A stretch of DNA of 64,000 nt from positions 4,092,001-4,156,000 of the forward strand of contig JANJGN010000042.1 of NCBI GenBank assembly GCA_026770705.1, read 5' to 3'. The position numbers and the translations under genes were made by a program. This document shows, piece by piece, positions 2,601-52,061 of the stretch; the first letter of the stretch is position 1, and every line of letters begins with the position of its first letter. Origin of the DNA: Isurus oxyrinchus. Taxonomy: Eukaryota. The notes below the pieces were generated by a model that saw nothing but the letters and a program-made list of their open reading frames with translations, did not search any database and had not been told where the DNA came from.

Positions 2601-3214
2601 GCTGTTATTCAGATTCCAGTGCAAGGAGCAATATATGCACACAGCAAAGTGAGGTAATTCAATAGTTGTGTCAACAACACAATAGAGCTACATTTACAGC
2701 GTGATAAATCATCCATGGTGACAGTGCCAACAATACAATAGATCTACATTGCAGTGTGATACTAGTGTGCTAAATACTTCGCCCACATTAATAATGACAA
2801 TAACAACATCGAATTACATTTAGACTGAGAGGCGGCACTGCTAAGTGGGAGAAACTTTTTAGTGAAGACATGAAACGGCATTGGTGAAGCAATCATAGTA
2901 ATTGCTGAAATGGATTTAAGTGTACTGGCAATGGGAAGAAACTGTTCTCGTGAAGGGGAGAAATGATACCCTTAAAGTGGAGAAAATGGACCAGTAATGA
3001 GCAGTAATATTGCGAGGAAAGGGAAGGTTTAATATCATTTAAAAGAAGAATTCACTAAACGTGGAGATAAGGATACTGTGAAAAAGGGAATACATTATAA
3101 AAAACAAATTATCATGTTAATGAGGTGAACCATAGAGAAGCAGTACAGCTAAATTAAATAAGTGATAGAGTGAAAAATGATTCTGGTAACTGGTAACTAA
3201 CCCTAATACTTTAC

Positions 3215-3284
3215 CTGGAATACCGATAGCTGCAAGAACGGGATAGTAAATGGCGAACACCAGACCTTGTGGTATCCCATGCAT
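3215..3284 (-). CDS. GPCR gene A, exon 1 (MHGIPQGLVFAIYYPVLAAIGIP)
   Basis: ATG at 3284, 70-nt exon ending CCA G|gtaaag. Phase matches exon 2. Near-identical in length and sequence to exon 1 at 18701-18770. Confidence 0.88.
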
Positions 3285-3335
3285 TTCTCTCATAAGCTCC
3301 GAGGGTGCTCTGTGCTACACCGAAAGACTGTTACA

Positions 3336-3490
3336 TTTATACATGATGTCGGACTCTAGGGAGACAAAGGGAAGGCCTTTTACATTAATTACACCAACTG
3401 AAAAAAAACATTTTAGTGCAGCTGGTGCCGCACTCGCGTTTATATTTTTGATGGAATGGAATCTGTTTTCAAGGACACTGGCACGGCTCC
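3336..3490 (-). promoter_or_regulatory. Proximal promoter of GPCR gene A
   Basis: TATAAA (3341-3336), O/E-like TCCCTAGAG (3362-3354), homeodomain TAATTA (3391-3386), CAGCTG E-box. Aligns by eye with 18490-18700. Confidence 0.55.
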
Positions 3491-6589: not shown

Positions 6590-7508
6590 TATCCCGCCAT
6601 TGTCACAGTTTGTGCCATTTGGCAATAGATTGAAAGAGTATTTAAACGCCCTTTTCAGCTCCGCTTTGTATTTCGTCTGGGTCCCTGCATATATAAATGT
6701 ATTGCTACAGGGTCTAAGGAGTTAAAAAACTATCAGCTTTGCTGCAGAATATATTTTGTGTCAATGGAAATGGAACTGATAGATCAGCTATTTCCCATAC
6801 TTTGTGCAAACAGGAAACGTACAATATGCGTTAAGACCAGCTGGAGGAAACTGCCTGAGATGGAGAAGAGTACAACAATAGACTTGCTGTGGCTCTTCAT
6901 CTCGGAGACACTCTGATTCTCTCCATTCCTTTGGGATCAGAGTCTGCTGCAGGATCTACTTGCCAGTAGAATATTTCAGAAAGTCTCAATATCGAGCAGC
7001 AAAATCAGGAGAAAGGAGAGACATGGAGTTAGAATACAGTCCAGCCAGTCAAATATTCTCCATGGAAATGAAATATAAAATGCATCATCTATGAGAGAGC
7101 ACCGAGTTACATTGTTAACGATATAAATAGGTTCATTTATGAAATAAAAAGGGTGTTTATCAAAGTGGACAGCACACAGATCATTCCTAAATTTCCAGTT
7201 GCTGTTTTCTAACTGCAGTATTCCATTTCCAGCTCCTGGTGACAAATGGCCAGGAAGCAGTAAAAGGTGAATTTGAAGGTTGACCAGAGAGTACAACATT
7301 TGGAACCAAAGTTTAAAGCAACAAAGACGACATAGAGGAATGCTGGACAGAAAACTGACTGGAAAATAAACAGCTGGAAATGAGCTTAATGTCACGATAA
7401 TGCTAATGACAAGGAGATCTGTCACCACCATGGATACCAGATACTGCGTGATACATCAGGAGAAACCACATATTCCTCTGGAAAAGATCACAATAATTAG
7501 AAAGTTAG
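6590..7508 (-). pseudogene. GPR139-like GPCR pseudogene (exon 2 remnant)
   Basis: Acceptor cttacag|CT AAC; reads ANFLIIVIFSRGICGFS*CITQYLVSMVVTDLL with an in-frame TGA and later frameshifts. C-terminus CSNTFIYAGTQTKYKAELKRAFKY is homologous to gene A. No exon 1 found. Confidence 0.88.
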
Positions 7509-7517
7509 CTGTAAGGC

Positions 7518-7518
<1 letters not shown>

Positions 7519-7551
<33 letters not shown>

Positions 7552-7552
7552 A
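7519..7552 (+). repeat. (GA)n microsatellite forming the polypyrimidine tract of the pseudogene acceptor
   Basis: Direct reading; paralogous tract at 9418-9440. Confidence 0.85.
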
Positions 7553-9258
7553 GAACAGAATTAGTGCCGAAACTCTCAGCTACACCTGCAGTTTGGTGGG
7601 AGAGGGTATGGAATTTGCATCATGAATACTTGATTCAACGCTGGAACTGATTAATTTAGCAAAGTAGTACGGCTGGTTTTTTTTTTATTAATATTGTCCC
7701 AAATAAATTGGAAGTTGGAACATGAAATAACGCAAAACACTTATTTTCTGATTCTTGTAAAGTTTATGCAATCTAGAAGTAGAAGGAATTGAACAAGACT
7801 AACGTATTAAATTGAGAAAAGGGCAGCCTGAAGATGGCATTACGTACAGATAATTAATCAATATATTTAGTCGTTTAAAATGCGGTAAATAATAACGTTA
7901 TGAAATGTTATGGAACCGCTATAATACTTAAAGCAATAGAATGACAGGAAATAAGATATGGATAATAACTCATTCCAAATAAATAAATGAGGGAACCACG
8001 GGACGATGGAAAATAAAGTTGAGCGAACGCCATTGATTCAATTCGGGTTTTGTTCCTGTGGAAACAGGGCAAGGAGCATGAGCGGTTTTTTTGCAGCTCA
8101 ATGATTGCTGTAGTGCGAGATTAGTTCTCGCATTATTAGTGAAGATTTTCAATTGAAGAAGCAGAAAGACCTCCACTGATTAAAAGTGCGACAGAGCAAA
8201 TAGTGCTGTCCTTCCTCAGGAGTATGCAGCTAGGTTAGGAACTCGAGATCGGGAGTAGGGCTCAAACCCATTGCTTGAACGCTGATATTTCAAAATTTAG
8301 ATCCCCGAAATAAAGTGGCTATGAGCATAATAAATGCCGGCTCCGATGGGTATCACACAGCCTTGACAACAAAATACATTTTAGGAGAATTGAATGGAGC
8401 AGTTAATAGCAGCAACAGAGTTAAAAAAAAGTCTTCATAACAGTTCATCGATAGCAACTATTTGATAAATTTACGAATAAACATGTGGAGGGTAAACAAA
8501 AATATAGAAAAATACATACCACTAATATTTATGGTTTCCCGCCAATTGGAAAATATGCTGATCCCTAATGGCTAAGCTCAAAGCGCCACAAAAAACACCC
8601 TTCCATAAATTATATTTCTTCTCCCACAGTTTGCTCATTCAGTTATCCAACAACAACTCTTCGCAATGTCCTCTTCTTAACCAAAATATTTACTGTGCCA
8701 CATGGCTTATTTTCGGCAGCAATTTGGATACGAAACTTACTGTTGCCTCATTTTTTAACCTCCTAAATGCGGTGAAAAGCTGAGACCCAAATACAAATCG
8801 TGCGAATCAGCTGTCACCCCCTGTCAGTTGAACTGTATTCACAGTATCCATCAACAAATTAGATGAACATTGCATATACCACAGCCATCGTGACTTAAAT
8901 TTACATCGATATCACTGTAAATTAACATCTAGGCAAGTACAATAAACGACCTGTTTAACTAAGAAATTCAAGAAATAATGACATTAATGAAGTAACAATT
9001 AAACTACATTGTGCAGCATTTGTATCATTGCCAAAAAGTCCGTCAACACACGACACAGAAATCGCAGGAACACATTAAGCAATCTTGAATCTTTTACTGT
9101 TGGAGAGCAGCCAAACATCCGGTAGAAGCTAGAAAGTAAACATCTGACCCTCAAGCCTTCACAGTTAAACAAAGATTGAAAAGACCTAATTCCGGAAAAA
9201 AATACGTAGAATACAATGAATTCAGATTTAGAATGTTTCTGTCTCGTCTTTTGAGTGG

Positions 9259-9409
9259 CTCAGAAAACTGACTGGAAAATAAACAGCCGAACACCGGCTT
9301 AATACCAGTGTAATGATAATAACATGGAGATCTGTCACCGCCATGGATACTGCGTATCTGGAAAGACCACATCTTCCTCGGGAACGGATCACGATAGTCA
9401 GAAAATTAG
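9259..9409 (-). pseudogene. Truncated GPR139-like exon 2 fragment
   Basis: Acceptor cttgcag|CT AAT; ANFLTIVIRSRGRCGLSRYAVSMAVTDLHVIIITLVLSRCSAVYFPVSFLS, then homology ends at the duplication junction. Confidence 0.85.
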
Positions 9410-11019
9410 CTGCAAGCGAGAGAGAGAGAGAGAGAGAGAAGGGAAGAATTAGTGCTGAATCTCCCAGCTACAATGTCCGTTTGGCGGGAGAATGGTATGG
9501 CACATGGGCCATCGATACTTCATTCAACGCTGGAACTGATTAGTTTACCAATGCATTAATTCTGGTCCATTTTTTATTTATATTGTCTCAGATAAAGTGG
9601 AAGTCGGAATACAAAATGACACAAAACTGTTACTTTCCGATTCATGTACATTTTATGTAATCTAGAAGGAGAAGGAATTGATCTTCACTAACGTATTAAA
9701 TTGGCAAAAGGACAACCACCTGAAAATGGCATAAAATACAGATAAAAGCTCAATACATTTATTCATTTATAAATACAGTAAATAATAACGTTATGAAACT
9801 TTAAATCACTATAATAAAGAAACCAATCGAATGACAGGAAATAAGATATGGGTAATAACGAAATCCTAATAAATATCAGAAGGAACCAATGTACGTTGAA
9901 AAAGAAAATCTAAGCGAACACCATTGATTCAACTTGGGTTTTGTCCCTGTGGAAGCAAGACAAAGCGCATCAAAGGCTTTTATTCAGTTCAGTGACTGCT
10001 GTAGTGGGAGATTAGGTCTCGCAGCAGTAGTGAGGGTTTTCAACTGATAAAGCAGAAAGACCTCGGTTTACAGCCTCGTCGGAAGGACCACAGAGTAGAT
10101 AGTGCTGGACTTCCTCAGCGGCATGGAGCTGGGCTACAGACACCAGTTCGGAAGTAGGGAACAAACCCAGGGCTTTCCGAATGAACACTGAGATTTCAAA
10201 ATTTAGTTGAGCTAAATAAAGTGGCTACGAATATAATTATTTCCAGCTCCGAAGGGTATCTCACAGCCTTGAAAACAAAGTGCACTTCTAAAGAGAATTG
10301 AATGCAGTTGTTAACAGCAGCAACAGAGTTAAAAATGGTCTTCATAACAATTCATCGACTGCAATGATTGATGTTAAAGTTACGCAATGCAAATCGAACA
10401 CCAATAAACATGTGGCGGGTGAACAAAAACATGGAAAATACTTACCACTATCATTTATAGTTTCACGCTAATTAGAAAATATGGTGACGTGCAATGGTTA
10501 AGCTTAAAGCGCCAGAGAAAAATATCTTTCCACAAATTGTATTCCTTCTCCCACAGTTTGCTCATTCAGTTATCCAACAACAACCCTTCGCAATGTCCTG
10601 TTCTTCTCTAAACTATTTACTGTACCACATGGCTTATTTTCTGCAGCAATTTGGATACGAAACTTACTGTTGCTTCATTTTGATCCTTCTAAATGCGGTG
10701 AAAAGCTGAGGCCCACATACAAATCCTGCGAATCAGCTGTCACTCCCTGTCAATTCAACTGTATTTGCATGATCCATCAACAAATTAGATGAGCTTTGTA
10801 CACACCGCAACCATCGTGAGTTAAATTTACATCGATATCAATGTAAAATTAACATCTAAGCATGTAAAATAAATGACCCGTTTAATGAAGAAATTGAGGT
10901 GTAAATTACAATATTGAAGTATCAATTAAACTATATTATGCAGCATCCGTATCATTGCCAATAATCCTGTCAACACAAGAAACAGAATGCCTGGGAACTC
11001 ATAAATCAACCTTCATGCG

Positions 11020-15060: not shown

Positions 15061-17650
15061 CACTTGAAGGAAACCATGCCGATGAAATCAGTGCGAGAGT
15101 GAGAGAGGGATATTGGCTTAGAAAATCTAGATGTAGATTCAACCTGGGTGGAGCTAAGAAGCAACAATGAGTGGAAAAGATCACTTATCTGTAGACCTCC
15201 AGACAGCAGTGCCGACATAGGGGTCGGCATAAAATAGGAACTTGGACTTGCATGTAACAAGGGTGCTCCAGAAATCATGGATGACTTTTAACTACATATA
15301 GAGTGTGCAAACCAAATTAGCAATTACAATGGCGAATGGATTCCTGTAGTGTGTACGAAATGTTTTTTTTTTCAGACTCGTATGTTGAGGAACGGACTGG
15401 GGATCAGGCTATCCTAGATTTGGTATAGTGAAATGAGAAGCACTTAAATCATAATCTTGTTGTGTTGGGTCCTTCGGGGAACAGTGACCAACATGATAGA
15501 ATTCTTCATTGGAATGGAAAGTGAAGTAGTCTGGTCTGAAACGAGGGTGCTAAATCTAACAAAGGAATTGACAAAGGTAGGAGATTTGAGTTGGCTAAGA
15601 TTGATTGGAGTACTTTATTAAAAGGAAAGATGGTACGTAGACAACGTCCAATGATTAACGAAAGTGTGCATACATTTCAAAAGTTATACTTTATTTTCTT
15701 GCCCAAAAGAACAAGACAGGAAAAACGGCCCCACCATGGGTAACAAAATAAATTAAGGATAGCTTTAGATCTAAAGAGAGTTCATGTGAAGATGTTAGAA
15801 ACATTAGCAAGCCTGAGGATTGGGAACAGTTTAGAACTCAGCAAAGGACGACCAAGAGTTCGAATAAGGGGGGAAAATATTGGATGAGGGTAAACTTGCA
15901 AGTAACATAAAAGCGGTCATTAAAAGCATCTATAAATATATTTATTAAAAAACCTCACAGTCTGAAACGGGAGCATTTATAATAGAACAATTACTTTAGC
16001 TCTGTCTTCACTTAGGGAGATATAAATAACTTCACAGAAATACGAAGGAACCTCGGGTCTATTGAGAAGGAAGAATTCAACGAAATTAATGTTACAAACA
16101 CAGTTGTGCTGGAGAAAGTAATCGGACTGAAAGCCAATCAATCCCCAAGACCTGATAATATACATCTTGGGGTACTAAAGGAGGTGGCCATGTAAATAGT
16201 GAGTGTAGTGGTTGTCATCTTCCAAAATTATGTAGATTCTGCAACAGTACCGGCAGATTGCAGCGTGTTAATTATAACCCCGCTATTTAAAAAAAAAATG
16301 AGTGAGGGAGAAAACAACGAATTACAGACCAGTCAGCCGAACCTCAATAGTAGGGGAAATGCTAGAGTCTATTGTAGAGTATGTGATAACAGGGCACTTG
16401 AAAAATATCAATGGGATGAGACAATGTCAACATGTATCTATCAGGGGAAATCATGTTTAACAAACCTTATGGAGTTTTTAAGGACATAACCTGCAAAAAA
16501 GATAAGGGAGAACCAGTGGCTGTGATGTATTTGGAATATCAGAAAGTCTTTGACAAAGACCCACATAAAAGGTTAGCGTGTAAAATTAAAGACAGGAAAG
16601 AGAGCAGGAATAAGTGGGTCTTCTTTGGCGTGGCAGGCGGTGACGAGTGGACTAGCAGGGATCAGTGTTTTGGCCCGAGCTATTTGCAATATATATAAAT
16701 ATATGTATATATACGATTTGCATGACGCAACAAAAGGCAACATTTCCAATTTTTGATGACACGAAACTTGGTGAGGATGTGAGAGACGAGGCGAGTGTTC
16801 AGACGCTTCAAGGCGACTTACGCAGGTTGAGTGATTGGGAAAATAAGTGTGAACTTATCTACTATGGCAGGAAAAGCAGATTAGCATAATATTATTTAAC
16901 TGGTGATAAATTTGGAAATGTTGATGTGCAAAGGGGCCGAGATGCCCTTGTGCAGCAATCACTGAAAGCAAGCATGCTGGTGCAGCAAGCACTTAAGGAC
17001 GTAAATGGTACGTTGACCTTTATTGCTACAGGATTTGAGAGCAGCAGCAATGATGTCTTACTGCAGCTGTGCATGGTCATTGTGAGATCACACCTGGAGA
17101 AGAGTGTGCAGTTCTGGTCTCCTTACCTAAGAAAGGATATATTTGCCATAGAGGGAGTTCAGCAAAGGTCCACCACGCTGATCTCTGGGCTGGTAGAATT
17201 GTCGTATGAGGAGAGATTGGGCCAGCAAGGCCTTTATTCATTGGAGCTCAGAAGAATGAGAGGCGATCCCACTGAACCATATGAAACTCTGACAGGGATC
17301 TACAGGCTGGTGCAGGGATGATATTTCCTCTGACTCGGGCGTCTAGAACAAGGGGTCACAGACTCAGGATACGGGGTAGACCATTTAGAACTGAAATGAC
17401 GAGAAAGGTCTTCAATCAGAAGGTGGCAAACGTGTGGAATTCTCTAGCACAGAAAGCTGTGGAGGTCAAGTCACTGCATATATTTAAAAAGTAAATAAAT
17501 AGACTTCTAGCCTTCAAATGCATCAAGGGGTATGGGGAGAGTGCAGGACTAAGGCGTTCAGATAGAGGATCAGCCATCATCAAACTGAATGGCAGAGCAA
17601 GCTCGAAGGGCTCGAAGGAGTAATCCTACTCCTATTTTCAATATTTCGGT
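15060..17650 (+). mobile_element. CR1 LINE, 5'-truncated and frameshifted ORF2
   Basis: GKSCLTNLMEF, VMYLEYQKVFDK, FDDTKLG (degenerate YADD region), VRSHLEKSVQFWSPYLRKDIFAIEGVQQR, GLYSLELRRMRGD, and CR1-type 3' tail. Confidence 0.9.
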
Positions 17651-18489: not shown

Positions 18490-18700
18490 TCCAGAACAAT
18501 GTCAGTGACCTTGAAGAGCTTTCTACTCCGTCAAAACAAAAATAATTTCCTGTCAGCTGCAGCACGACCATCTTTGTTTCAATTAGCGTAATTATTGCAA
18601 AAGATCAAAGCGTCTAATTGTCTCCCTGGAGGCTGGCGTGAGATATATATGTGACTGTCTTTAGTTGTGGTGCAGAACACACTCGCAGCTGGTGACAGAA
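18490..18700 (+). promoter_or_regulatory. Proximal promoter of GPCR gene B
   Basis: TGACCTTG nuclear-receptor-like site, CAGCTG, TAATTA (18589-18594), TAATTG (18615-18620) abutting TCCCTGGAG (18623-18631), TATATAT (18644-18650). Conserved with the gene A promoter. Confidence 0.6.
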
Positions 18701-18770
18701 ATGCACGGATTGCCAAAAGGTCTTATTTTCATCATATACTATCCCGTCCTTGCAGCAATCGGGATTCCAG
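18701..18770 (+). CDS. GPCR gene B, exon 1 (MHGLPKGLIFIIYYPVLAAIGIP)
   Basis: ATG at 18701, 70-nt exon, donor G|gttaag; paralogous to 3284-3215. Confidence 0.88.
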
Positions 18771-20160
18771 GTTAAGTATTTTGGTTTGCTATGCTATTGA
18801 AATCATTGTTTAATCACTTCCCTTTGGTCTGCTTTCATTTTAGTGAATCATTGTTCGTATTTAGGAGCTTTGCTTCTACATGGTACGATATTCTTTCTCC
18901 CATTAAACAGGACAATCTATCAACATTACGGCGACATCGTCCCAATTTATCACGCTAGACAATGTCACTTTTTTCCACTTCAAGGGAAATGCTTAATTTA
19001 ATTCTCCACTTTAGCAACACAATTGTTTTCTTTTACTGACATGATTAGTCGTCATCACATGTCGAGTCGCTCAAGTTTGTCTGTGCCATTTCTTCCCTTG
19101 AACATAGTTTCTCCCCAATGCAAGAATAATAGTTCAGCAGTAACAATGCACTATCTTCCCTGAGCTAGTAACATTTAATCAGTTTAATTGGACACTTTCA
19201 TCAGTTTACCGCCACCGTTCGAGGTTTTAGATGTTCTTTTATTTTATTCTTGGTATTTTTAAAAAGCTTAATGTATAACGCTGTTACCACTGAGGAAAGG
19301 TTTTTCTATTGTTTCAACGGCATTGTCACCGTGGGTGAATTATTACAGAGGAACTGTATCTTTATTATGCACTATCTCATTCTTTTCCCTTTAACCTTTC
19401 GTTGGAATATGAACAGTATTTATCTGATAAATCTGTGCAGAATATTAAATGACTGGCCCAGGGTTTCTTACCTTAGCGGAAACCTGGCACCCTGGGCGGC
19501 GAAGAATTCTCAGGGAGCTGAAGTTGGGCTTTAATCCAGGACGTTTTGACTCTAAAGCTTGACGTCTTTCAATTTAAAAGCAACTGAACCTTAAACTGTG
19601 TGTGGATTTCCACCCTGCTGTGAAGGACAGTTGTGTTCGCTGCACGTCATCATAACTCAGGAGTTCTAGTTACCCTTTATTTCCTTCCAAAGGAGTTTTT
19701 TTTCCCATTATTTCTGTTCTCATTTGCTGGATTATGCCCACAAGAGTAACACTTTGTATTTAATTCCATTCAACGCCATCTACTCAGTTTCTGTCAAATT
19801 CGTAGGTCGATTTAACATTGTGTACCTTTCTTTTTCCAATGTCCTAGCCTGTTCTTCTCTAAACAACAAGCAAGAGGATACTTGATTGTTTTTCATTTAA
19901 CTGAGTAACAATGCAGCAATTTGAATATTCACTATAGGACTGAGCCCGCATTCCTCCTGTAAATCAGCACAGTATTGACAATTTGCTGCATTTTGGAATG
20001 AGTCTTTCTTTCTCCACTGGAGTATATAAGTCATAGGACTGAAATGGGAACATTGCTCTCTTTTCATGACCAATGCTGTATTTGTGAGTTTCTCAACATT
20101 TTCTGTTCTATATTCATTTGTCCCCACCGCAAACTTACTGGTTATATTCCTCTGTCACAG

Positions 20161-21068
20161 CTAATTTGGCAGTAATTGTGATCCTGTCCCGAAGAAGATG
20201 CGGTCTCACTGGATGTATCACATACTACCTGATGTCCATGGCCGTGACGGATCTCCTGATCATGATCCTTGCTGTGATGTTAAACCGGATTGTAGGTACA
20301 TATTTCCCATTTAGTTTCCTCTCCATCACTCCGGCCTTTGCTCTCAGTCTTGTGTTCATATATGGCGTCAGGGATTCTTCTGTCTGGGTGCCAGTTGCTT
20401 TCACCTTTGATCGATTTGTAGCCATTTGTTGTCAGCAGCTGAAAACCAAATATTGCACCAAGAAATCGGCAGCTGTGGTCATAGGAACTGTCTGCGTTGT
20501 GCATTGTGCTAAAAGAATACCCTTGTACTTTGCTTGTGAACCTTCTGTTATCACGGACAATACACCCTAGTACTGCAAACTAAAGCCAATATATTATTCG
20601 TCACCCGGATGGGTGGCATATGACAGCATAAATGCCGTTTTAACCCCTTGTCTCCCATTCGTTCTTATTTTGCTGCTCAATGTTCTGACGGTCAGGCACA
20701 TTGTTGTGGCCAGTCGAGCCCGCAGAAGACTGCGAGCCTACAGCAAGAGCGAGAAACAAAGCGACCCAGAGATGGAGAAGAGGAGAAAGTCCATCGTTTT
20801 ACTCTTTGCCATCTCGGGAAGTTTCATCCTGTTATATTTCCTCGCTCTTATAACTTTCCTCTACGCACGAATTGCCAGCGTTAGTTATTTCGATGGCTCG
20901 AATTTCAATCAATCAAATATAATAATGGAGGAATGTGGACTTATGCTGCAGCTTTTAAGTTCCTGCATCAACCCCTTTATTTATGCAGGTACCCAGAGTA
21001 AATTCAGAGAGGAGTTAAAGAATGGTGTGAAATATCCATTGAGTCTGATTGTTAATTTTTTTAAATGA
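20161..21068 (+). pseudogene. GPCR gene B, exon 2, interrupted by a single nonsense codon
   Basis: Acceptor tctgtcacag|CT AAT TTG. ORFs 20118-20570 and 20613-21068 are in one frame, separated by TAG at 20568-20570 where gene A has Trp (DNIPW vs DNTP*). DRF and SSCINPFIY intact. Confidence 0.88.
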
Positions 21069-21429
21069 TGAAAGCAGTGAAATCCAACATGAATTCTACA
21101 TTATACCCCACCCATTGCTGTTGCTGTACATGTTACATATGGCTTCAACCCGCAGAAACAGAGTTACCTCCTGTCCGAGGTGTGAATTCAGAATTATATA
21201 ACTAACTCTGCATTTTCCCAGTTTGTTTGTATTTTTTGTCCCCTTTCCAGAGCGGGCCTGGTACATTCCCAACTGTCCCTAAGGTCCCGGGGTGTCTCGA
21301 CGTTCATGTAGGAGACAAAGTGTCCGACAAAAATGTATAACTTGGCAACAAAGTTTCACTATTAAATGTAGGAACCTTGCTACCTCCCCTTCCTATGTTT
21401 TGGAACTTGATGGTAGATGGCGCCCTGAA

Positions 21430-22439: not shown

Positions 22440-23825
22440 GAGTCCCATGTCAGTGGTCCGGAAACTATTGGAGAAAATTCTGAAGGAAAGAATCTACCTT
22501 AACTTGGAGAGAGAAGGTTTGATAAGAGATATTCAGCATTGATTCTTTAGAGGTAGGTCATGCCTAACAAATTTGACTGAATTTTTGAGGAGGTGACCAG
22601 GTGTGTACATGATGGTAGTGCAGTTGATGTAGTTAATATGGATTTCAGAAAAGCCTTTGACAAGGTCCCATATGGCAGCCTTATAAATAAGGCAAATACA
22701 CATGGGATACAGGGTAATTTGAAAAGGTGGATTATAAATTGGCTTAGTTGTAGGAGACAGAATGTAATGATAGAAGGCTGCTTTGGTGACTGAAAACCCG
22801 AGTCCTGTGGTGTACCACAGAGATCTGTGCTGGGTTGCCTATTATTCATTATTTATATAAATGACATAGATGACTATGTGGGGAGTAGGAATAGTAAGTT
22901 TGCGGATGACACAAAGATTGGCCGGTTGGTTTACAGTGAGGTTGAGAGGCTTGGGCTGGAGGAAGATATCGGCGTGGTGGTCAAATGGGCAGATAAGTGG
23001 CAGATGGAATTTACCACTGAAAAGCAAGAGGTTATACACTTTGGAAGGAGTAATTTGACAAGGAAGTATTCAATGAACGGCATGGCACTAGGAAGATCTG
23101 AGGAACAAAGGGACCTTGGTGCATGTGTCCATAAGTCTCTGAAGGCAGAGGGGCATGATAGTGGGGTGGTGAAAAAGGCATTTGGGACAATTGCCTTTCT
23201 CAATCGAGGCACGATTGCAAAAGTGGAGGGGTCATGTTGGAGTTGTATAGAACTTTGGTGAGACCACAGCTGGAGTGCTCTGTGCAGTTTTGATCGCCAA
23301 ATGATAGGAAGGATGTGATTGTGCTAGAGGCGGTGTAGAGGAAGTACACGTGGATGCAGCCTGGGATGAACCATTTACGTTATAAAGAGTGGTTGGATAG
23401 AGTTGGGTTTTTTCGGCGAATCAGAGAAGACTGAGGAGCGGCCAGTTCAAGGTGTACAAGCTTGTGAGAGGTATTGAAGGGGTGGATAGGGACAGCTGTT
23501 CCCCTTAGTCAAAGGCTCAGTCACGAGGGAACACAAGTTCAAGGTGAGGGGCAGGAGGTTTCGTGGGGATGTGAGGGAAAACCTTTTTTACCCAGGTATT
23601 GGGGACGGTCTGGAATACGCTGCCTGGGACAGTGGTGGAGGCGAGTTGCCTCACATCCTTTATAAAGTGTCTAGATGAATACTTGGCATGTCCTAACATT
23701 CAAGGTTGTGGGCCAAGCGCTGGTCAATGGGATTAATTAGGTAGGTCAGGTGTTTCTCACGTGTCAGTACAGACTCGATGAGCCGAAGGGCCTCTTCTGC
23801 ACTGTGCGATCCTTTGATTCTGTGA
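22440..23825 (+). mobile_element. CR1 LINE 3' part (RT domain), decayed
   Basis: AVDVVNMDFRKAFDKVPYGSL, LLFIIYINDID, SKFADDTKIG, WADKWQMEF, EQRDLGA; 3' tail gattctgtga. Confidence 0.92.
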
Positions 23826-29929: not shown

Positions 29930-32100
29930 GATTTATGCCATTTAGAAACATTATATTTCCCTTTCTTACCGCCAAAGTGCACAACTTCACATTTGTGCAC
30001 TTTGTGCTCCGATAGGAAGTCCATCTGTTGCCCTCTCCCTTAACCTTTCGACATCAACTTTCAGCCTCCTTGTGTTCACCTCACAGCTTGCACCCGCACC
30101 TAGCATTGAATCGTCAGCAACTCAATTATTTTCCAGGTCTTTTCCGAAGTGATTAATGCAAATTGTAGCTGAGGCCATCATTGAAAGTTGCGGCACTCCA
30201 CTGGTGACAGCCTGCCAGCCTGAAAGTGCCCAGTAAACCGTATTATTTGCTTCCTCGACATTGACCAATCTTCTACTCATGCTAATGTATTCGCTTCAAA
30301 CCCATGAGTTATCATCTTACGAACTAACCTTTGTGTGGAATCTTGAGGGATTTAAGTTCGAAGTCCAAGTCTATGACATCAACTGGTATCTAAAAGGGGG
30401 CAAAAACGATGTCACTATCATAACCCATGAAGATCCTCCCCAATCATAGCATAAGTCTATTAATGAGTTGTTCAGAATTCTTAACAATCGATTCCCACAG
30501 TTCCTGGTGACCGAAGAAAGGCTCACTGTACTTCTGGTCGACATGTGGCATTTTTTTTACCATCTCTCTCTGCTGAAGTGCAAATAATGTCTGTCTCTCC
30601 AATTCCAAACATCTTTCTACAGCTTATCTTCTTCAGGTTTTGCAGTCGACCATCTTCAACAGCTTTGTTTCCTCCACAAATTCGGCCATTGTTGTTGTGT
30701 CATCGAGCTTCGGGTAATTATTAACGGCATTAAAAAAAAAGGTTCAAATAAGGAGACTCTAGGATATCCACTTTAACAGCCCCTCAGGCCAATTCATCTC
30801 TGTATCCATGCCTTATAGGCACTATGCATCAACATGCTAGTAACCCATTGAAAAATATATCCACTGATTCCAGCAACTGATTCCTAGATGAACTACGTAC
30901 AAGGACTAAAAAAGCCAAGGGTATCACATCCATTAAATGGACCCTACCTAGTGAAGTTTAATGATACAGACTCCCTTTCATGAACATATATCGACTATAT
31001 ATTGAGATAACTTTACATCCATCTGTTCCATGGCTTTATTTGCAGCAACGGTTGCACAGCATTACACACTCTGAACATCAAACTTATTACTTTGTACTTT
31101 CCTGGATCAAATTTGCATCTGCTTTTCTGGAGCACCAACCACTCTTTAATAGTCAGGGCTTTCTCTTTGATTTGTGTGCGGCACCCTGCAGGTTGCTTAC
31201 GTATTTGCATAAGGAAGCTCGATTAAATTTAAGTGGCCACTTAGGTCGACGAATCAGAATTGAATTTTGGACAGCTGTTCATCAACCATGTTGATCGCAA
31301 TGTGACCTGAGTCACAACGATTCTCTGACGCGCTCCATAAAAACAGTCATTTTTTAAATCCATGGAGGTGTTTTAAATATCTGCACGAAATTCGCCTATT
31401 CCCACTTCTCTACTAACAGTAAAAGAATATATTTCTGGGTCGCAATTACTGATGATTGAAAATTTGTCTGTCCCAATATCCCACTCCAATAACATGAAAA
31501 AAATACAATATCAATTTATTGTGCTCTCTTCGGAGAGTGTTTCTATATGCACGAGGAAATGCTGGACACATTTCGTCGGCTGGATAACATCTCGGGATTG
31601 AGAACAAAAAAACAGTTAACTGTTTCAGGTCGATGAGCTATCAACGAAACTGAAAAGTGTTAGGGGAGTTTTATGGAAATGCTGATTGGACTTTCAGTCA
31701 ACATGCGTGGACTATTCAGTGGACATATTCGTGAAAAATTTATCTTGGAACATTTAATCAGTTGAAATTTCCCAACCATCTGCAAATGTTGCGGCATTTA
31801 TCTCAATGGGAATTCCTTGATTTTTGAAGCACTACCATTCTGGATGACCCCGAGTCTTAATCTCATTTAAGATCATAATTTCCAACCAGTAGATTTCCTC
31901 GGCTTAATCTTCCTACCAAATTACACCACTTCAATCTTGGTCAGAATCAAATTACTTTGCCATTTATTCTCATGAGTTTTTGATATTCTTGTATTTGGTC
32001 ACATTTATCCTTAGCATAAGCAAAACCTCAGCCCTTCCTAAATTAGTGAGGTACGCAAATGTTTTATACTATACTTCCCAACACTGAGATCAGTTCATAC
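29930..32100 (-). mobile_element. Highly decayed CR1-type LINE fragments
   Basis: HKCEVVHFGGKKGK, RLSPVEC (tggagtgccgca) and other minus-strand RT remnants. Confidence 0.5.
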
Positions 32101-36124: not shown

Positions 36125-37140
36125 TCGCATCGGAACAGAGGAACAGGAGAATGCCATTCAACCCATCGAACCTGTCCCACCTTTCATTGCGATCATGGAT
36201 GATCATCTCCTTCAACATCTTTCACCCACACTATCCTCATACCGTTTATATCTTTGGTATTTAGAAATCTGCCATTCTCTGCTTGAAACATACTCAATGA
36301 TTGTGCTTCGACAGCTCTCCGGGATGCAGAAATACAAACATTCGCAAACCACTGAGTAAAAAACAATTCTCCTCATGTCAGTCCTAGTGGCTTTACCCTT
36401 ATTTTGAAATTGTGTCCCCTGTTTCTAGATTCCCCGACCAGGGGAAACATCTGACCTTCATTTACACTTTCTTCCATTCAGGTGTTTTGTTTGTTATAAT
36501 GAGATCTTTTTGCTCATGTTTGGAAACTCTGGAGAATACAGGTCCAGTGTCCCCAATCCTTCTTCACAGGACAGTCACGCCATCCCTGATGCAAATCTGG
36601 TGAGCCTTCGATTCACTCCCTCAATAACATTGACTCCCTTCCGAATGTAAGGGGGCCACACCTGCACGTTGTACCCCAGGGGTGGCCTAACCAAGATTAT
36701 ATACAAAGGAAATGAGAATTCACTATGGCTGTATTCAAATCCACTTGTGAGAGAAGCTAACATTCTTTTCGCCTTCCTAAATGCTTCATATGTATGCCAG
36801 GTTTCAGAGACTTATTGATGAGGGTACACAGGCCCCCTTGTACAGCTACATTTTCCAGGCTCTCACGTTTTATGAAATAATCTGCACCTCTGTTGATCCT
36901 ACCAAGCTGGTTAACCTCACATTCTTCCACGTTAAATTTCATCTTTCCTGTTCTGTCCCCCTCACCAAGTCTGTCCAAATCGCCTTGAAACTGTTTTTCA
37001 CCTTCCTCACAATACGCGTTCCCACCAAGCTTTGTGTCATCCTCGAACTTGGAAATATTACATTTGGCGCTCATATCCAAATCATTCATGTGTTGTGAAC
37101 AGCTGGCTCTCAAGTAGTGAGCCTTCCAATTGCCCACTGG
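36125..37140 (-). mobile_element. CR1 LINE 3' part, decayed
   Basis: MNDLDMSAKCNISKFEDDTKLGG, MKFNVEECEV, LVRPPLGYNVQVWPPYIRKGVNVIEGVNRR. Confidence 0.88.
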
Positions 37141-38054: not shown

Positions 38055-38956
38055 TCACTGTTTAATACATTTAAAAATTACAGAAAAGGGATATTTCACT
38101 ACATTCTTCAGCTCATTTCTGAATTGAGTCTGGGTCACTGCATAAATGGCCGTGTTAGTGCAACAACTCAGGAGCTGAAATATAAATCCCAGTTCCTGCA
38201 CAAACCTAGGAAGGTATACAGGAATTGCATCTAACACATATAGCCTATTACAAACAGAATTTATCATAAAAACTAACCACAACAGGATAAAATTCCCCGA
38301 TATAGCAAACAGTAAAATGATGGATTTCCTGCGTTTCTCCATCTGTGGGTCCCTGGGTCTCTCCCCACTGCAGTGAGCCCGGAGTCTCCTGCGGGCTCTG
38401 CTCGACACTAAAATATATCTGACAGTTAAAGCGTTCAACATCAAAATCAAAACAAATGGCACAAATGGTGTTAAAATATAATGAAGACATTCGATTGCTG
38501 CCCACATTGATGAGAATTCAGCATCCGTCACTAATGTGCAAAACCAAGGAGCATTGGAAAGCGAATAATGACCTACATACATAATATACCAGAATGAATC
38601 CTTCACACAGAATAGCAGACTGACTGTTCCGAGAACCACAGCCGCCGTATGCTGGGTGCAATATTTTGTTTTCAACTTCTGGGAACAAATAGCCAGAAAT
38701 CTATCAAAGGTGAAAGAGACTGTGAACCAGACAGAACAATCTGTGGCTGCATAAAGCAGGACTGCATGGATATTACACACTTTAAACCTCCACATGAACT
38801 GAAACTGAGCCCAGTAAAGAATAGCAATTTGCCTGAATATGAGATCAAGGATAACGACTAGTAGATCCGCGGTTGCCATGGACACCAGGTAAAGGGAAAC
38901 ACATTTTGAGAGACCGCACCTTCCCCGAGACAGTGTCACAATAGTCAGTATGTTCA
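38055..38956 (-). CDS. GPR139/142-like GPCR (gene C), exon 2; full CDS join(44314..44218,38956..38055), 332 aa
   Basis: Acceptor ccttacag|TG AAC (VNILTIVTLSRGRCGLS). Uninterrupted frame with MATADLL, FTFDRFLAIC, APWFC, LSCCTNTAIY. A different subfamily from genes A and B. Confidence 0.92.
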
Positions 38957-41478: not shown

Positions 41479-44217
41479 TAACACATATTGCATGTTAGCT
41501 TTCTCTAGATTGTGTACCCGAGCAGCCAAATTATGAAAATTTACAATTTTTACCAGTTTCTCGACTGTTTAAACGCTGGATGAGGATAGAATGAAACTCG
41601 TCTGTGTTATTATCTCAGGGAAACTGAAGATTCTGGTGCAATATTAACACAGGGCTTTGATGCATGTTTAAATTAATATGTCAGATAATTCATAAAATTA
41701 ATGGTCCTGGCCTCCTATTTGGTGGCGATACTTGGATAATCAGCGCTGATTGTAAATGTAATTAAAGCCGTATCTTTTTCCACCCTTGCAGCTTGTTTTT
41801 CTTGCCTCCATAGCGGGGTGGGGGAAATGAGCTGTGTACGAGGTGCGTAGATGGCGGGTGGTCAGCAGTTGGGATGGGGATGGGTGAGTAGTTAATGTGC
41901 TTTGCAGTCGGTTGGGGGTTGAATGGACGGGCGATGGCTAGTGAGAGCTGTGCAAGTGGATCGAGGGGAAGGCAATCGAGTCAGATTAGATATTCTGGGG
42001 TCAGTAGTTGGGGGTGTTGTGGGTTGTTGTGTGTGGGATGAATGTGGGAGTTCTGTAGGTGGGGGTTGGGCGTGCATGGGCTTTGCTTGAAAGTTATTCA
42101 CTGACACATGCTAGAAATTAATAGCGGGAAAATACTACGCCAAGCATCTGTCACACAACAGGCACAACAGTCCAACACTAAAGTCAGTATTGGAGTCATT
42201 GTTAGAGGGGCCTGGGCAATACAAATCTGCCCATCTGAAGTTTAAAGTTCATGGGAAATTACCATGCATGCTCCTGGATCAAGATTTCAGATCGGTCCTG
42301 ATATGCAGAGCGGCAGACATTGCAATATTCACCACTGTTGGCATCTGGAGTTCCGGTTAATGATATAGTCAGTATTAATTTCTCGGCAATGGACTCCAGA
42401 CACTAGCTGCAGATAGAGGGAAATTACACAAGAGCGAAATGGAGATCAGGTCAAAGAAGGCTGGCTTAGGGTGAATAACAATAAAGAACACATTTTAAGA
42501 ATTATCTTAAAGGATGATAAGTTTGTGGCGAGGACAAAGGATTTAGGAGGAAATTCAGAACATGAAACTCTTAATACTTCATTGTGGTCACCCATGCCAA
42601 AGGCTGCAGACATGTCGACAAAAGGGAAGAGAGGCAGCTCGACATTAGCAGAGTCACATAAGATATAATTTGTGCCTTTGCTAAGGACGGTGTAAGAGTT
42701 GTAATAAGGTAGAAAAATGGTAAGAAAGATTTAAGCATGGTGTCCCTGGAAGATGGGGCAGAAACGTGGGGGGTAGCAGCAGAAACAAGGAATTTGTAGA
42801 GGAAAGAGAGGTTAGAGATGGAGTGTTTGCTTACAAAGACTGAGGCAACAGGGGTTGCTTATTTACAAGGGCAGGGGTAATGACTACAGAATGGAGCAGC
42901 AAAGAACAGTGGCTAAGCAGATGGAACTATTAACTATATCAGCAACTGAGGAACATGATGAGGAAGTTCGGTGTTCAGCAGTTTGGTGGGAGTACGGTGA
43001 AACAGTCCGCACCAGCAGCCACCCCTCCACCCACACCCTACACCATGCCTCCCACCAACCCAATCAAACGCCTGGAAATCTCACATCTGAAACATAATGG
43101 AATGCTCACTACTCATCAGTATGGTTATCAGAGCAACACCCAATAAGCAGAATCCCCTTCAATAATTGAATAGATTTTCCATCAGTGTCCGTCCATCATT
43201 AAACTTGCTATTTCTCCACCTCCACCTCTGTGGATGAAGGAAGAATGTCTACAGAATCAACTACAACAACACACCGGGGCTACTTCGACAGGACGTACCA
43301 GCACAGCAAAATGCAGAAGGTGTGCAATGCCGTGAGATTGACCTTCTCTAACGCACCATCCTGACTTGGAACGGTAACATCTCCCTTCATCAGCGTTCCG
43401 GAATTCCCTAACAGCAGGTAGGAGCACAGTCAGCAGAGGGAATACTTCAGCTCAGCAAGAAGACTCAGCACCAACTTCTCAGCTCACTTCCGGATGGGTA
43501 ATAAATGGAAGTTTGTCACAAGCATCCATTTCCCAAGGACACATTTTGAAAAAAAAACTTTGAGAGGGGGATAATGATTTGCAGCTCTAAATAACGTCAT
43601 GCAGAGACAAGGGAAGGGAATTAGGTCTGTGGACAGAAATGGGAACGGAGCCAATTGTTGGTGAGGGGAGCAAATATTGTTGAACAATTATTACATTTTA
43701 AATTCTCTCCTAAATATCTAAATTTGGTTATTGTTAGGCAAAGCGGGAGATGGTGGAACGGAATTTGCCTGGAGCTGAATTATTATGTGAGATCTTCCCT
43801 CGTTCCTGTCTGCCCTAATTTCCGCAGATCAGTGCAAATTACTATCTGCATCGCACTGCAAAACCAATACCTGCGCAACATATTCTGCTCAGATATTGGG
43901 GTTCAGTTTAAACAGCAGACTGCAGCTGTTCAATAGCTATAATTCATCACTAATATTTATTGCATAAAATATTATACCAGCCAAATTCTGAAGAAAAAAA
44001 TCATTTGAAGCAAGTCTTGAGATATACAAACGGTCCAATGAACTGTGAACAGTGAATCAGCAACTGCTGAAATGCTACTTCACAGAAGCACAGGGCATTA
44101 CATGTCACAGGACACAAGAATTACAGAGAATAAAATTAATTAACTTACGTTAAGGGTAAGGACAACAAACATGGTGAAAGATGTTTTATAAAATAAGTTT
44201 CTAAAATAATCACTCAC

Positions 44218-44314
44218 CAGAAATGCCAACAGCAGCGAGGAGCGGATAGTAAATCCTTTGCAAATCATAAATCACCCAGACAATCCGAAGTTCAGTTGGA
44301 ATTTCAAAGAACAT
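44218..44314 (-). CDS. GPCR gene C, exon 1 (MFFEIPTELRIVWVIYDLQRIYYPLLAAVGIS)
   Basis: IYYP.LAA.GI motif as in genes A and B; donor G|gtgagt, phase 1 matches exon 2 across a 5.26 kb intron. The start codon is less certain because the frame is open further upstream without an ATG. Confidence 0.85.
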
Positions 44315-44399
44315 GATCTCATTTGCTGTGAGATCCAATGATCGCTGTTTATACTGGCGACCACACTCTGTCAAACACTGATATACACATTGAAAACAT

Positions 44400-44590
44400 T
44401 GCCTAGATATAGGCGGAGGAGAGTCCTGGTGATTCAATTAAACAATACACTGGCTGGCATTAATTACAGTCACTTAACAAACAAGATGCCTTAACCCTTT
44501 CATCCCATCACTTTGTATGGAAAAAATATACTAAAAACTACATGGCATTCCTGTCAAGATAATTTATTCAAAGCAAGCACGTGACGTCAG
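44400..44590 (-). promoter_or_regulatory. Proximal promoter of GPCR gene C
   Basis: Minus-strand TAATTA (44466-44461), TAATTG (44440-44435), TATA-like TATATC (44411-44406); overlapping CACGTG and TGACGTCA at 44578-44589. Confidence 0.5.
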
Positions 44591-51569: not shown

Positions 51570-51714
51570 AAATGCAGTCAACCGTTGTATTGAAGGAAAT
51601 GATTTAACGTGAGCCCGTGTGTGTGCGCGTGTGCGTGTGCATTGGAAAGCCTATTTCGTCCAAATGAAAAAAATCTAAAAGTTGCATTGATAACATTCTG
51701 TTATTGTTTTCCAG

Positions 51715-52022
51715 AATACGGCCAACAGGAGAGACTTTCCCAAACACCCTCAATTGTAGCAGTGAGTGAAGGTGATACTGCGGTGTTGTCCTGTATCTAC
51801 CCAGCGACATACACAGCTGCTTACCTATTCTGGTACGTACAGTACTCGGGAAAAGGCCTTCAGTATATGCTGCTCAGACACACGACTGGGAATGAAGAGA
51901 ATGCACCAGCTTTTGCAAAGCGCTTTTCAGCCGTACAGGATAGGAGCAACACAAACATCCCTTTGAACATCACAGACACCCAGCTCTCTGACTCAGCCCT
52001 GTATCACTGCGCGGCTATGAAG
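51715..52022 (+). CDS. T-cell receptor alpha/delta-like V gene segment (V exon open; leader appears defective)
   Basis: Acceptor ttttccag|AA. QERLSQTPSIVAVSEGDTAVLSC-IYPATYTAAY-LFWYVQYSGKGLQYML...KRFSA...LNITDTQLSDSALYHCA has the V-domain Cys, Trp and Cys; followed by an RSS. Confidence 0.88.
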
Positions 52023-52061
52023 CACCACGTTACATAAATCCTTACCACTGGTACAAAAACT
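52023..52061 (+). other. 23-bp-spacer recombination signal sequence, non-canonical heptamer
   Basis: CACCACG (52023-52029) + 23 nt + ACAAAAACT (52053-52061). Confidence 0.75.

Follow-up and report, generated by a model that had tools for sequence, protein, structure and literature searches.

The 64,000-nucleotide stretch of Isurus oxyrinchus DNA considered here (GCA_026770705.1, contig JANJGN010000042.1, positions 4,092,001 to 4,156,000; hereafter the window, in whose own numbering all coordinates are given) is shark DNA carrying three two-exon genes, denoted A, B and C, of one family of class A G protein-coupled receptors (GPCRs). Upstream of the first exon of each gene lies a compact arrangement of short motifs, comprising one or two homeodomain-type sites, a TCCC element and a TATA box; the layout of these motifs, its conservation and its likely role are the subject of this report. 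Gene A, on the reverse strand, has a first exon at 3215–3284 (ATG at 3284, donor GT at 3214), encoding 23 residues, and a second exon at 1041–1951, an open frame matching the Pfam model 7tm_1. Gene B, on the forward strand, has its first exon at 18701–18770 (23 codons plus one base, hence phase 1; donor GT at 18771), with the ATG at 18701 and not at 18702; its second exon, preceded by the acceptor CACAG, occupies 20161–21068. Gene C, again on the reverse strand, has a somewhat longer first exon at 44218–44314 (32 codons plus one base; donor GT at 44217) which is separated by an intron of ~5.26 kb from the second at 38055–38956, likewise an open frame matching 7tm_1. Each of the three introns has phase 1 and GT..AG boundaries, and all interrupt the coding sequence at the same point within the first transmembrane helix. 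The short N-terminus attributed to these receptors in a preliminary description of the locus is borne out by first exons which encode only 23 (A, B) or 32 (C) residues.

The exons were translated and searched separately, not joined. Pieces of A, B and C match 7tm_1; the sole additional Pfam match is a sub-threshold one to Srw, for one piece of B (E ≤ 0.01), and no piece of the three receptors matches the odorant receptor (OR)-specific Pfam model, the general 7tm_1 model being matched instead. The N-termini of A and B are of the MHGxPKGLVFAIYYP type found in NCBI shark models, with which the exon-1 peptide of gene B (MHGLPKGLIFIIYYPVLAAIGIP) agrees, whilst that of C is of the MFWYVPTELR type and agrees with the Heptranchias models P0123 and P0124. 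In the leader of gene C an out-of-frame upstream ATG is present at 44322 (reverse strand), 8 bp ahead of the true start codon; this upstream ATG lines up with the start-codon surroundings in A and B (CAGAAATG versus CAGCAAATG).

An in-frame TAG at 20568–20570, missed in the preliminary description, makes gene B a likely pseudogene. This codon replaces a tryptophan found in 130 of 133 aligned family rows and falls in the W-x-C of the second extracellular loop, the frame being otherwise open, such that the break is confined to a single codon. At ~1773–1775, gene A has a phenylalanine where 132 of the 133 rows keep the cysteine of the third transmembrane helix, to which the loop cysteine is usually joined by a disulphide bond; the same phenylalanine is present at the matching place in exon 2 of B (TPAFAL; judged by eye), and dN/dS between A and B is nevertheless 0.27.

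The promoter elements are described here as HD (homeodomain-type) and O/E (Olf/EBF) sites, with HD1 denoting GTAATTAWTG and HD2 denoting TAATTG. In gene B, HD1 (GTAATTATTG) occupies 18588–18597, with its TAATTA core at 18589–18594, 112 bp before the ATG. HD2 follows at 18615–18620 (−86 from the ATG), 26 bp after HD1 (start to start) and 29 bp before the TATA box. An O/E-like element (TCCCTGGAG; 18623–18631, −78), which matches the core TCCCYNGRG, is separated from HD2 by two bases (TC), and is thus near to HD2 but not directly abutting it as first reported; the TATA box (TATATAT) is located at 18644–18650, −57 from the ATG. In gene A, on the reverse strand, HD1 (GTAATTAATG) is at 3383–3392 (−107), an O/E-like element matching the same core (TCCCTAGAG) at 3354–3362 (−78), and the TATA box (TATAAAT) at 3335–3341 (−57). 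The reverse-strand promoter of gene C has an HD1 identical to that of A (GTAATTAATG; 44458–44467, −152), HD2 at 44435–44440 (−126), a degenerate TCCC element in the same register as the O/E-like elements of A and B (TCACCAGGA; 44424–44432, −118), and a TATA-like box (TATATC) at 44406–44411 (−97); a further TATAAA is present at 44353.

The distances between these elements are regular. In B and C, HD2 starts 26 bp after HD1 and TATA 29 bp after HD2, identical to the base, and the TCCC element precedes TATA by 21 bp in A, B and C alike; in both A and B the TCCC element stands at −78 and TATA at −57, whilst the distance from HD1 to the O/E-like element is 5 bp shorter in A than in B. The preliminary description holds up well on these points: its motif strings are all present in the three genes where it placed them, or one to two bases away; the 26-bp spacing is common to B (18589 to 18615) and C (from its TAATTA to 44440); the O/E match of C at 44432–44424 is indeed weak; and gene A does keep HD1 and the O/E-like element, being the only one of the three to depart from the shared layout of two homeodomain-type sites and TATA, with the TCCC element in A and B. 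Its formulation of the O/E motif as YYYCARRRR proved too loose, with 93 matches in the window.

We compared the occurrence of these motifs with chance, the resulting figures being illustrative because the patterns were written after inspection of the sequences. GTAATTAWTG has three matches on the two strands of the 64 kb (0.43 expected; three were reached by 1 of 100 shuffles), and all three are the promoter sites of A, B and C, upstream of exon 1 and in gene orientation. Pairs of TAATTR separated by 18 to 22 bases in the same orientation occur twice (0.46 expected; two were reached by 9 of 100 shuffles), in the promoters of B and C, with a gap of exactly 20 in each. TAATTR followed after 23 nt by TATA likewise occurs only twice in the window, again in B and C. 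Homeodomain cores are present at 1.4 per kb, and 0.24% of 60-bp windows hold at least two. The TCCCYNGRG core is not enriched (two matches, 4.87 expected), its matches being one in the promoter of A and one in that of B, at homologous positions. The joint coincidence of motifs and spacing in C is far beyond chance.

Comparison of the promoters with the remainder of the genes was used to weigh selection against shared ancestry. A and B are duplicates which can be aligned across the whole gene (63% identity over 3286 columns; dS 0.63, dN/dS 0.27), with identities of 54% in the intron, 74% from TATA to ATG, 80% in exon 1 and 79% in exon 2. Their proximal promoters (128 bp; 18573–18700) are 69% identical, a value reached by none of the 1262 intron windows of 128 columns. 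Gene C is much more distant: its protein is 47% identical to A and likewise to B, its dS values of 1.32 (to A) and 1.25 (to B) indicate saturated synonymous sites, and in BLAST comparisons with either gene exon 2 alone aligns; an unconstrained promoter should therefore be randomised between C and A/B. In an ungapped comparison over a 77-nt core, however, B and C share 37 identities, against a mean of 19.9 (standard deviation 3.9) for placements throughout the window, and these identities cluster in blocks over HD1, HD2, the TCCC register and TATA. Scores of at least 37/77 were obtained at 5 of 127,848 placements, which include B itself, A and C. Placements at 29953 and 10456, which equal the ungapped score of C against B and were considered as additional promoter copies, are attributed to chance because their identities are scattered and do not fall in motif blocks. 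The layout is conserved beyond chance and, for C, beyond neutral decay; the module is under selection and has been copied along with the genes, its motifs and spacing surviving between subfamilies whose silent sites are saturated.

The reading we prefer, and consider probable, is that the arrangement is a real, selected proximal promoter module of a shark-expanded family of orphan class A GPCRs (named ‘probable GPR139’ at NCBI). The module, ~60 bp in length, would comprise HD1 (GTAATTAWTG), HD2 (TAATTG) 26 bp further on, the TCCC element 2 bp later and TATA 21 bp after the TCCC element, with the start codon following 57 to 97 bp after TATA in a tiny first exon. TBP/TFIID bound at the TATA box would set the transcription start ~28 bp downstream, near an invariant CAGA, whilst one or two TAAT-binding homeodomain factors would confer cell-type specificity, possibly with the help of a further factor, of EBF type or other, bound to the TCCC element. 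Such control by TATA and homeodomain factors would place all members of the family under one shared regulator.

Besides the retrospective definition of the motif patterns, several observations weigh against this reading. Only three promoters enter the comparison and, because A and B are recent duplicates, they amount to effectively two independent observations. The promoter of A has no second homeodomain site, and that of C no good TCCC element. When the HD1-to-TATA stretch is taken alone, A and B are 65% identical, which 5.4% of intron windows attain. At 18589, the first base of the HD1 core in B, three of four related DNA runs, which differ overall by ~3% from the window, have C (CAATTA, not TAATTA); among the differences listed for these runs none falls at 18590–18656, from which no conclusion is drawn. 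Finally, the promoter of B, which provides the best example of the layout, need not work today, because gene B is a likely pseudogene.

The family to which the module belongs is large. A search with exon 2 of gene A returned 1433 proteins at E ≤ 0.001 among 2146 candidates, and one with exon 2 of gene C returned 1789 among 3155, in keeping with the earlier view of a birth-and-death cluster within a large family subject to frequent gain and loss; intact and broken copies stand side by side. Species, names and identities were taken from the best 120 matches of each search. Among these, every named protein is from a shark (one JGI row is nameless), the genera being Heterodontus, Heptranchias, Pristiophorus, Stegostoma, Rhincodon, Scyliorhinus, Carcharodon, Chiloscyllium and Mustelus, and most are labelled ‘probable GPR139’ by NCBI. 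A and C each have, among the matches listed, relatives at 70–79% identity in both Heptranchias and Heterodontus; since A and C are themselves only 47% identical, the split between their subfamilies is older than that between these two genera. In an alignment of 132 relatives with exon 2 of A, mean entropy is 1.50 in the outer half of the receptor (134 positions) and 0.73 in the inner half (158 positions), and the outer half contains 33 of the 40 most variable positions, the division into halves being a rough topology which we set from class A landmarks. A metagenome search for shark DNA with an exon-1 pattern gave no matches, and a metagenome protein-alignment scan gave 99 pattern matches with no relative among them. 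Our literature searches, one of which was poorly designed, found no paper describing a shark expansion of this GPCR family or its promoter.

Among 12 sequencing runs listed, no RNA run contained the locus. Four runs which do contain it (X1–X4, each with 0.37 of the query words, equal to the exon share of the query) were suspected of being RNA; they are DNA, because their contigs cover intron and flanks alike with no joint between exons 1 and 2. These runs are ~3% different from the window, and one contig of 702 letters has 22 differing letters. Summed contig depth in the DNA runs is up to ~30-fold higher over 20312–20445 and 20982–21115, which encode the DRF and NPxxY parts of the receptor, and this rise indicates that many paralogues in that related genome are at least 95% alike over those stretches.

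In which cells the module acts is a separate matter from its existence. The alternative that fares best, and to which we would give a little short of an even chance, is that it drives expression in some other cell type than olfactory neurons (other sensory or chemosensory cells, cells of the immune system or germ line, or brain neurons, the site of mammalian GPR139) through a different homeodomain or POU factor, in which case the TCCC element would be no EBF site. TAATTA and TAATTG are bound by many homeodomain classes, more than 10 matrix families with cores of this type appearing in a table of PMC3247239; the TCCC element makes up no more than half an EBF site; among solved structures GPR139 is the closest, albeit at 31.8 bits; and the cluster adjoins a V-set gene segment with a recombination-signal-like sequence. 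There is, however, no positive pointer to any other tissue. Large, fast-turning GPCR families of vertebrates are, moreover, mostly sensory, which also counts against this alternative.

A second alternative, which we regard as doubtful, is that the promoter is of the OR type, bound by Lhx2/Emx2 and Olf/EBF factors, and that the family is sparsely expressed in olfactory sensory neurons as an unrecognised odorant receptor repertoire of sharks. It is favoured by motif types (O/E, homeodomain and TBP) which are those described for OR promoters in passages of PMC12547500 and PMC3247239, by the order and register of HD2 and the TCCC element in B and C, which are those of the published Lhx2–Ebf composite, by the very large size of the family with its intact and broken copies adjacent, and by the concentration of variability in the outer half of the receptor. 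Against it stand the departures of the promoters from their OR counterparts, which are detailed below, together with the biology of the shark nose as currently described. According to PMC10116579, the olfactory neurons of the catshark would seem to be microvillous and Go/TRPC2-positive without exception, with ciliated neurons apparently missing. The 50 most specific catshark ‘brain & olfactory epithelium’ genes given in PMC11979771 include no GPCR, a point of little weight given how rare the transcripts of any single receptor are; in the passages concerned neither paper addresses the present family. The runs listed likewise offer no RNA in support. Olfactory neurons are one candidate cell type for the module, and the related claims differ in standing: we see a broadly sensory or chemosensory role as evenly balanced, olfactory expression of the family as rather less likely than its absence, and an actual Lhx2/EBF mechanism as unlikely.

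That the shared motifs arose by chance as AT-rich hexamers, or were simply carried over by duplication, and have no regulatory role, is very improbable: homeodomain cores are common in the window, TCCCYNGRG is not enriched and part of the likeness between A and B is recent ancestry, but C, with no non-coding DNA alignable to A or B, has the 10-mer, the 6-mer and TATA at identical spacing, and the likeness between the promoters of A and B exceeds that of every intron window of equal length.

The preferred reading, a selected promoter module of the receptor family, has consequences beyond this locus. Sharks have a keen sense of smell, yet three of the four known families of olfactory receptors contain very few shark genes, and the catshark nose is reported to rely on ~34 V2R genes (PMC10116579). 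The size of the present family, with well over 1000 database entries across sharks, the variable outer and conserved inner halves of its receptors and the one compact promoter which they share together make it an obvious candidate for a further sensory repertoire. In its boldest form, which we think improbable at present, the module would be the shared ‘on’ switch of a shark-specific class A family hundreds strong, which would itself be the missing chemosensory repertoire (olfactory or other), governed in microvillous neurons by an ancient homeodomain and EBF code older than the subfamily split. Whatever the tissue, a module of ~70 bp could be built into a reporter, used as bait to capture transcription factors, or followed across the genome to tag members of the family; should the family prove non-sensory, it would still provide a clean case of a promoter layout long kept across a fast-turning gene family.

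The window also contains remnants of the family and several unrelated features. A decayed copy lies at 6623–7506 and a fragment at 9258–9407, both on the reverse strand, and the blocks 7348–8595 and 9261–10521 form a tandem duplicate (76% identity over 1291 columns). No HD–TATA module was seen upstream of the decayed copy or the fragment; exon-1-like strings at 7967 and 9857 are part of the decayed duplicated copy, lack the module, and were discarded as promoters of this kind. Between the GPCR genes, open frames at 16199–17321, 22827–23261 and 36757–37137 resemble, by eye, pieces of retroelement reverse transcriptase. An immunoglobulin gene segment of the V-set class (Pfam V-set, E 3.9e-16), with YHCAA at its end, is present at 51609–52061 (forward strand). 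A heptamer resembling a recombination signal (CACCACG, 52023) comes next, and a spacer of 23 nt separates this from the nonamer ACAAAAACT (52053); to judge from these features, the segment looks like a V segment of the T-cell-receptor type. Mammalian T-cell receptor alpha loci are flanked by OR genes.

Comparison with OR promoters, the first of three known systems, reveals both likenesses and differences, and the resemblance claimed in the preliminary description stands in part. In passages of PMC12547500, OR promoters are described as exceptionally AT-rich and as containing homeodomain, MEF2A and TBP motifs, often together with an O/E motif no more than a few hundred bp from the start. The shark promoters likewise combine TAATTA/TAATTG sites, a TCCC-type element and TATA within ~100 bp of the presumed start, with homeodomain sites near that start (HD1 in A, B and C; HD2 in B and C), and, as with ORs, one promoter type is common to many members of a clustered, fast-turning receptor family. 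This part of the claimed likeness, the homeodomain sites near TATA, is sound, although their cores are generic; the O/E part is reduced to a loose core. The O/E matrix consensus core given in PMC3247239 is TCCCyngrg, which the elements of A and B match in its loose form, but both are two mismatches from the EBF palindrome TCCCNNGGGA; the perfect palindrome is absent from the 64-kb window, and palindromes with at most one mismatch number 10 (16.1 expected), none of them in a promoter. Nor are the shark promoters unusually AT-rich, the GC content of the 200 bp before the ATG being 0.405–0.43 compared with 0.414 for the window. Their spacing is rigid, whereas OR promoters are described as motif-enriched and not as fixed in layout, and the ATG of the shark genes lies 57–97 bp from TATA, whereas the mean start-to-ATG distance for mouse ORs is 4.2 kb (PMC3247239). 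The shark receptors themselves are not members of the OR family.

The second comparison is with the Greek Island composite of mouse OR enhancers, in which Lhx2 and Ebf sites stand 1 bp apart, as set out in passages of PMC11643329, where its search pattern is printed, and described also, though not spelled out letter by letter, in parts of PMC5608512 and PMC7804114. In B, and weakly in C, three bases lie between TAATTG and a pyrimidine-rich TCCC element downstream of it; with sites in this order and register, both promoters agree with the published pattern at 16 of its 17 positions. The pattern has, however, 138 full matches in the window and 1493 at 16/17 or better (23 sites per kb), and we rejected the match as evidence, since a pattern this loose, with 1493 window sites equally good, says little. 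In addition, enrichment of the side-by-side composite is described for OR enhancers and not for OR promoters (PMC12547500), being intergenic and depleted from OR promoters (PMC11643329), whereas the shark pair sits in the promoter itself, 21–29 bp upstream of TATA, and gene A is without the homeodomain half.

The third comparison concerns the receptors rather than their promoters. The best match of the family to a solved structure in the PDB is GPR139, and NCBI names most of the listed relatives ‘probable GPR139’. The shark genes have two coding exons with the intron in the first transmembrane helix; GPR139 has the same structure. The structural match to this member of the GPR139/GPR142 subfamily amounts to only 31.8 bits (E 8.6e-07), and other listed members are named GPR15-like, capa receptor-like, FMRFamide receptor-like and sex peptide receptor-like by NCBI. 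The shark family appears to be a separate, hugely expanded lineage and probably not orthologous to GPR139.
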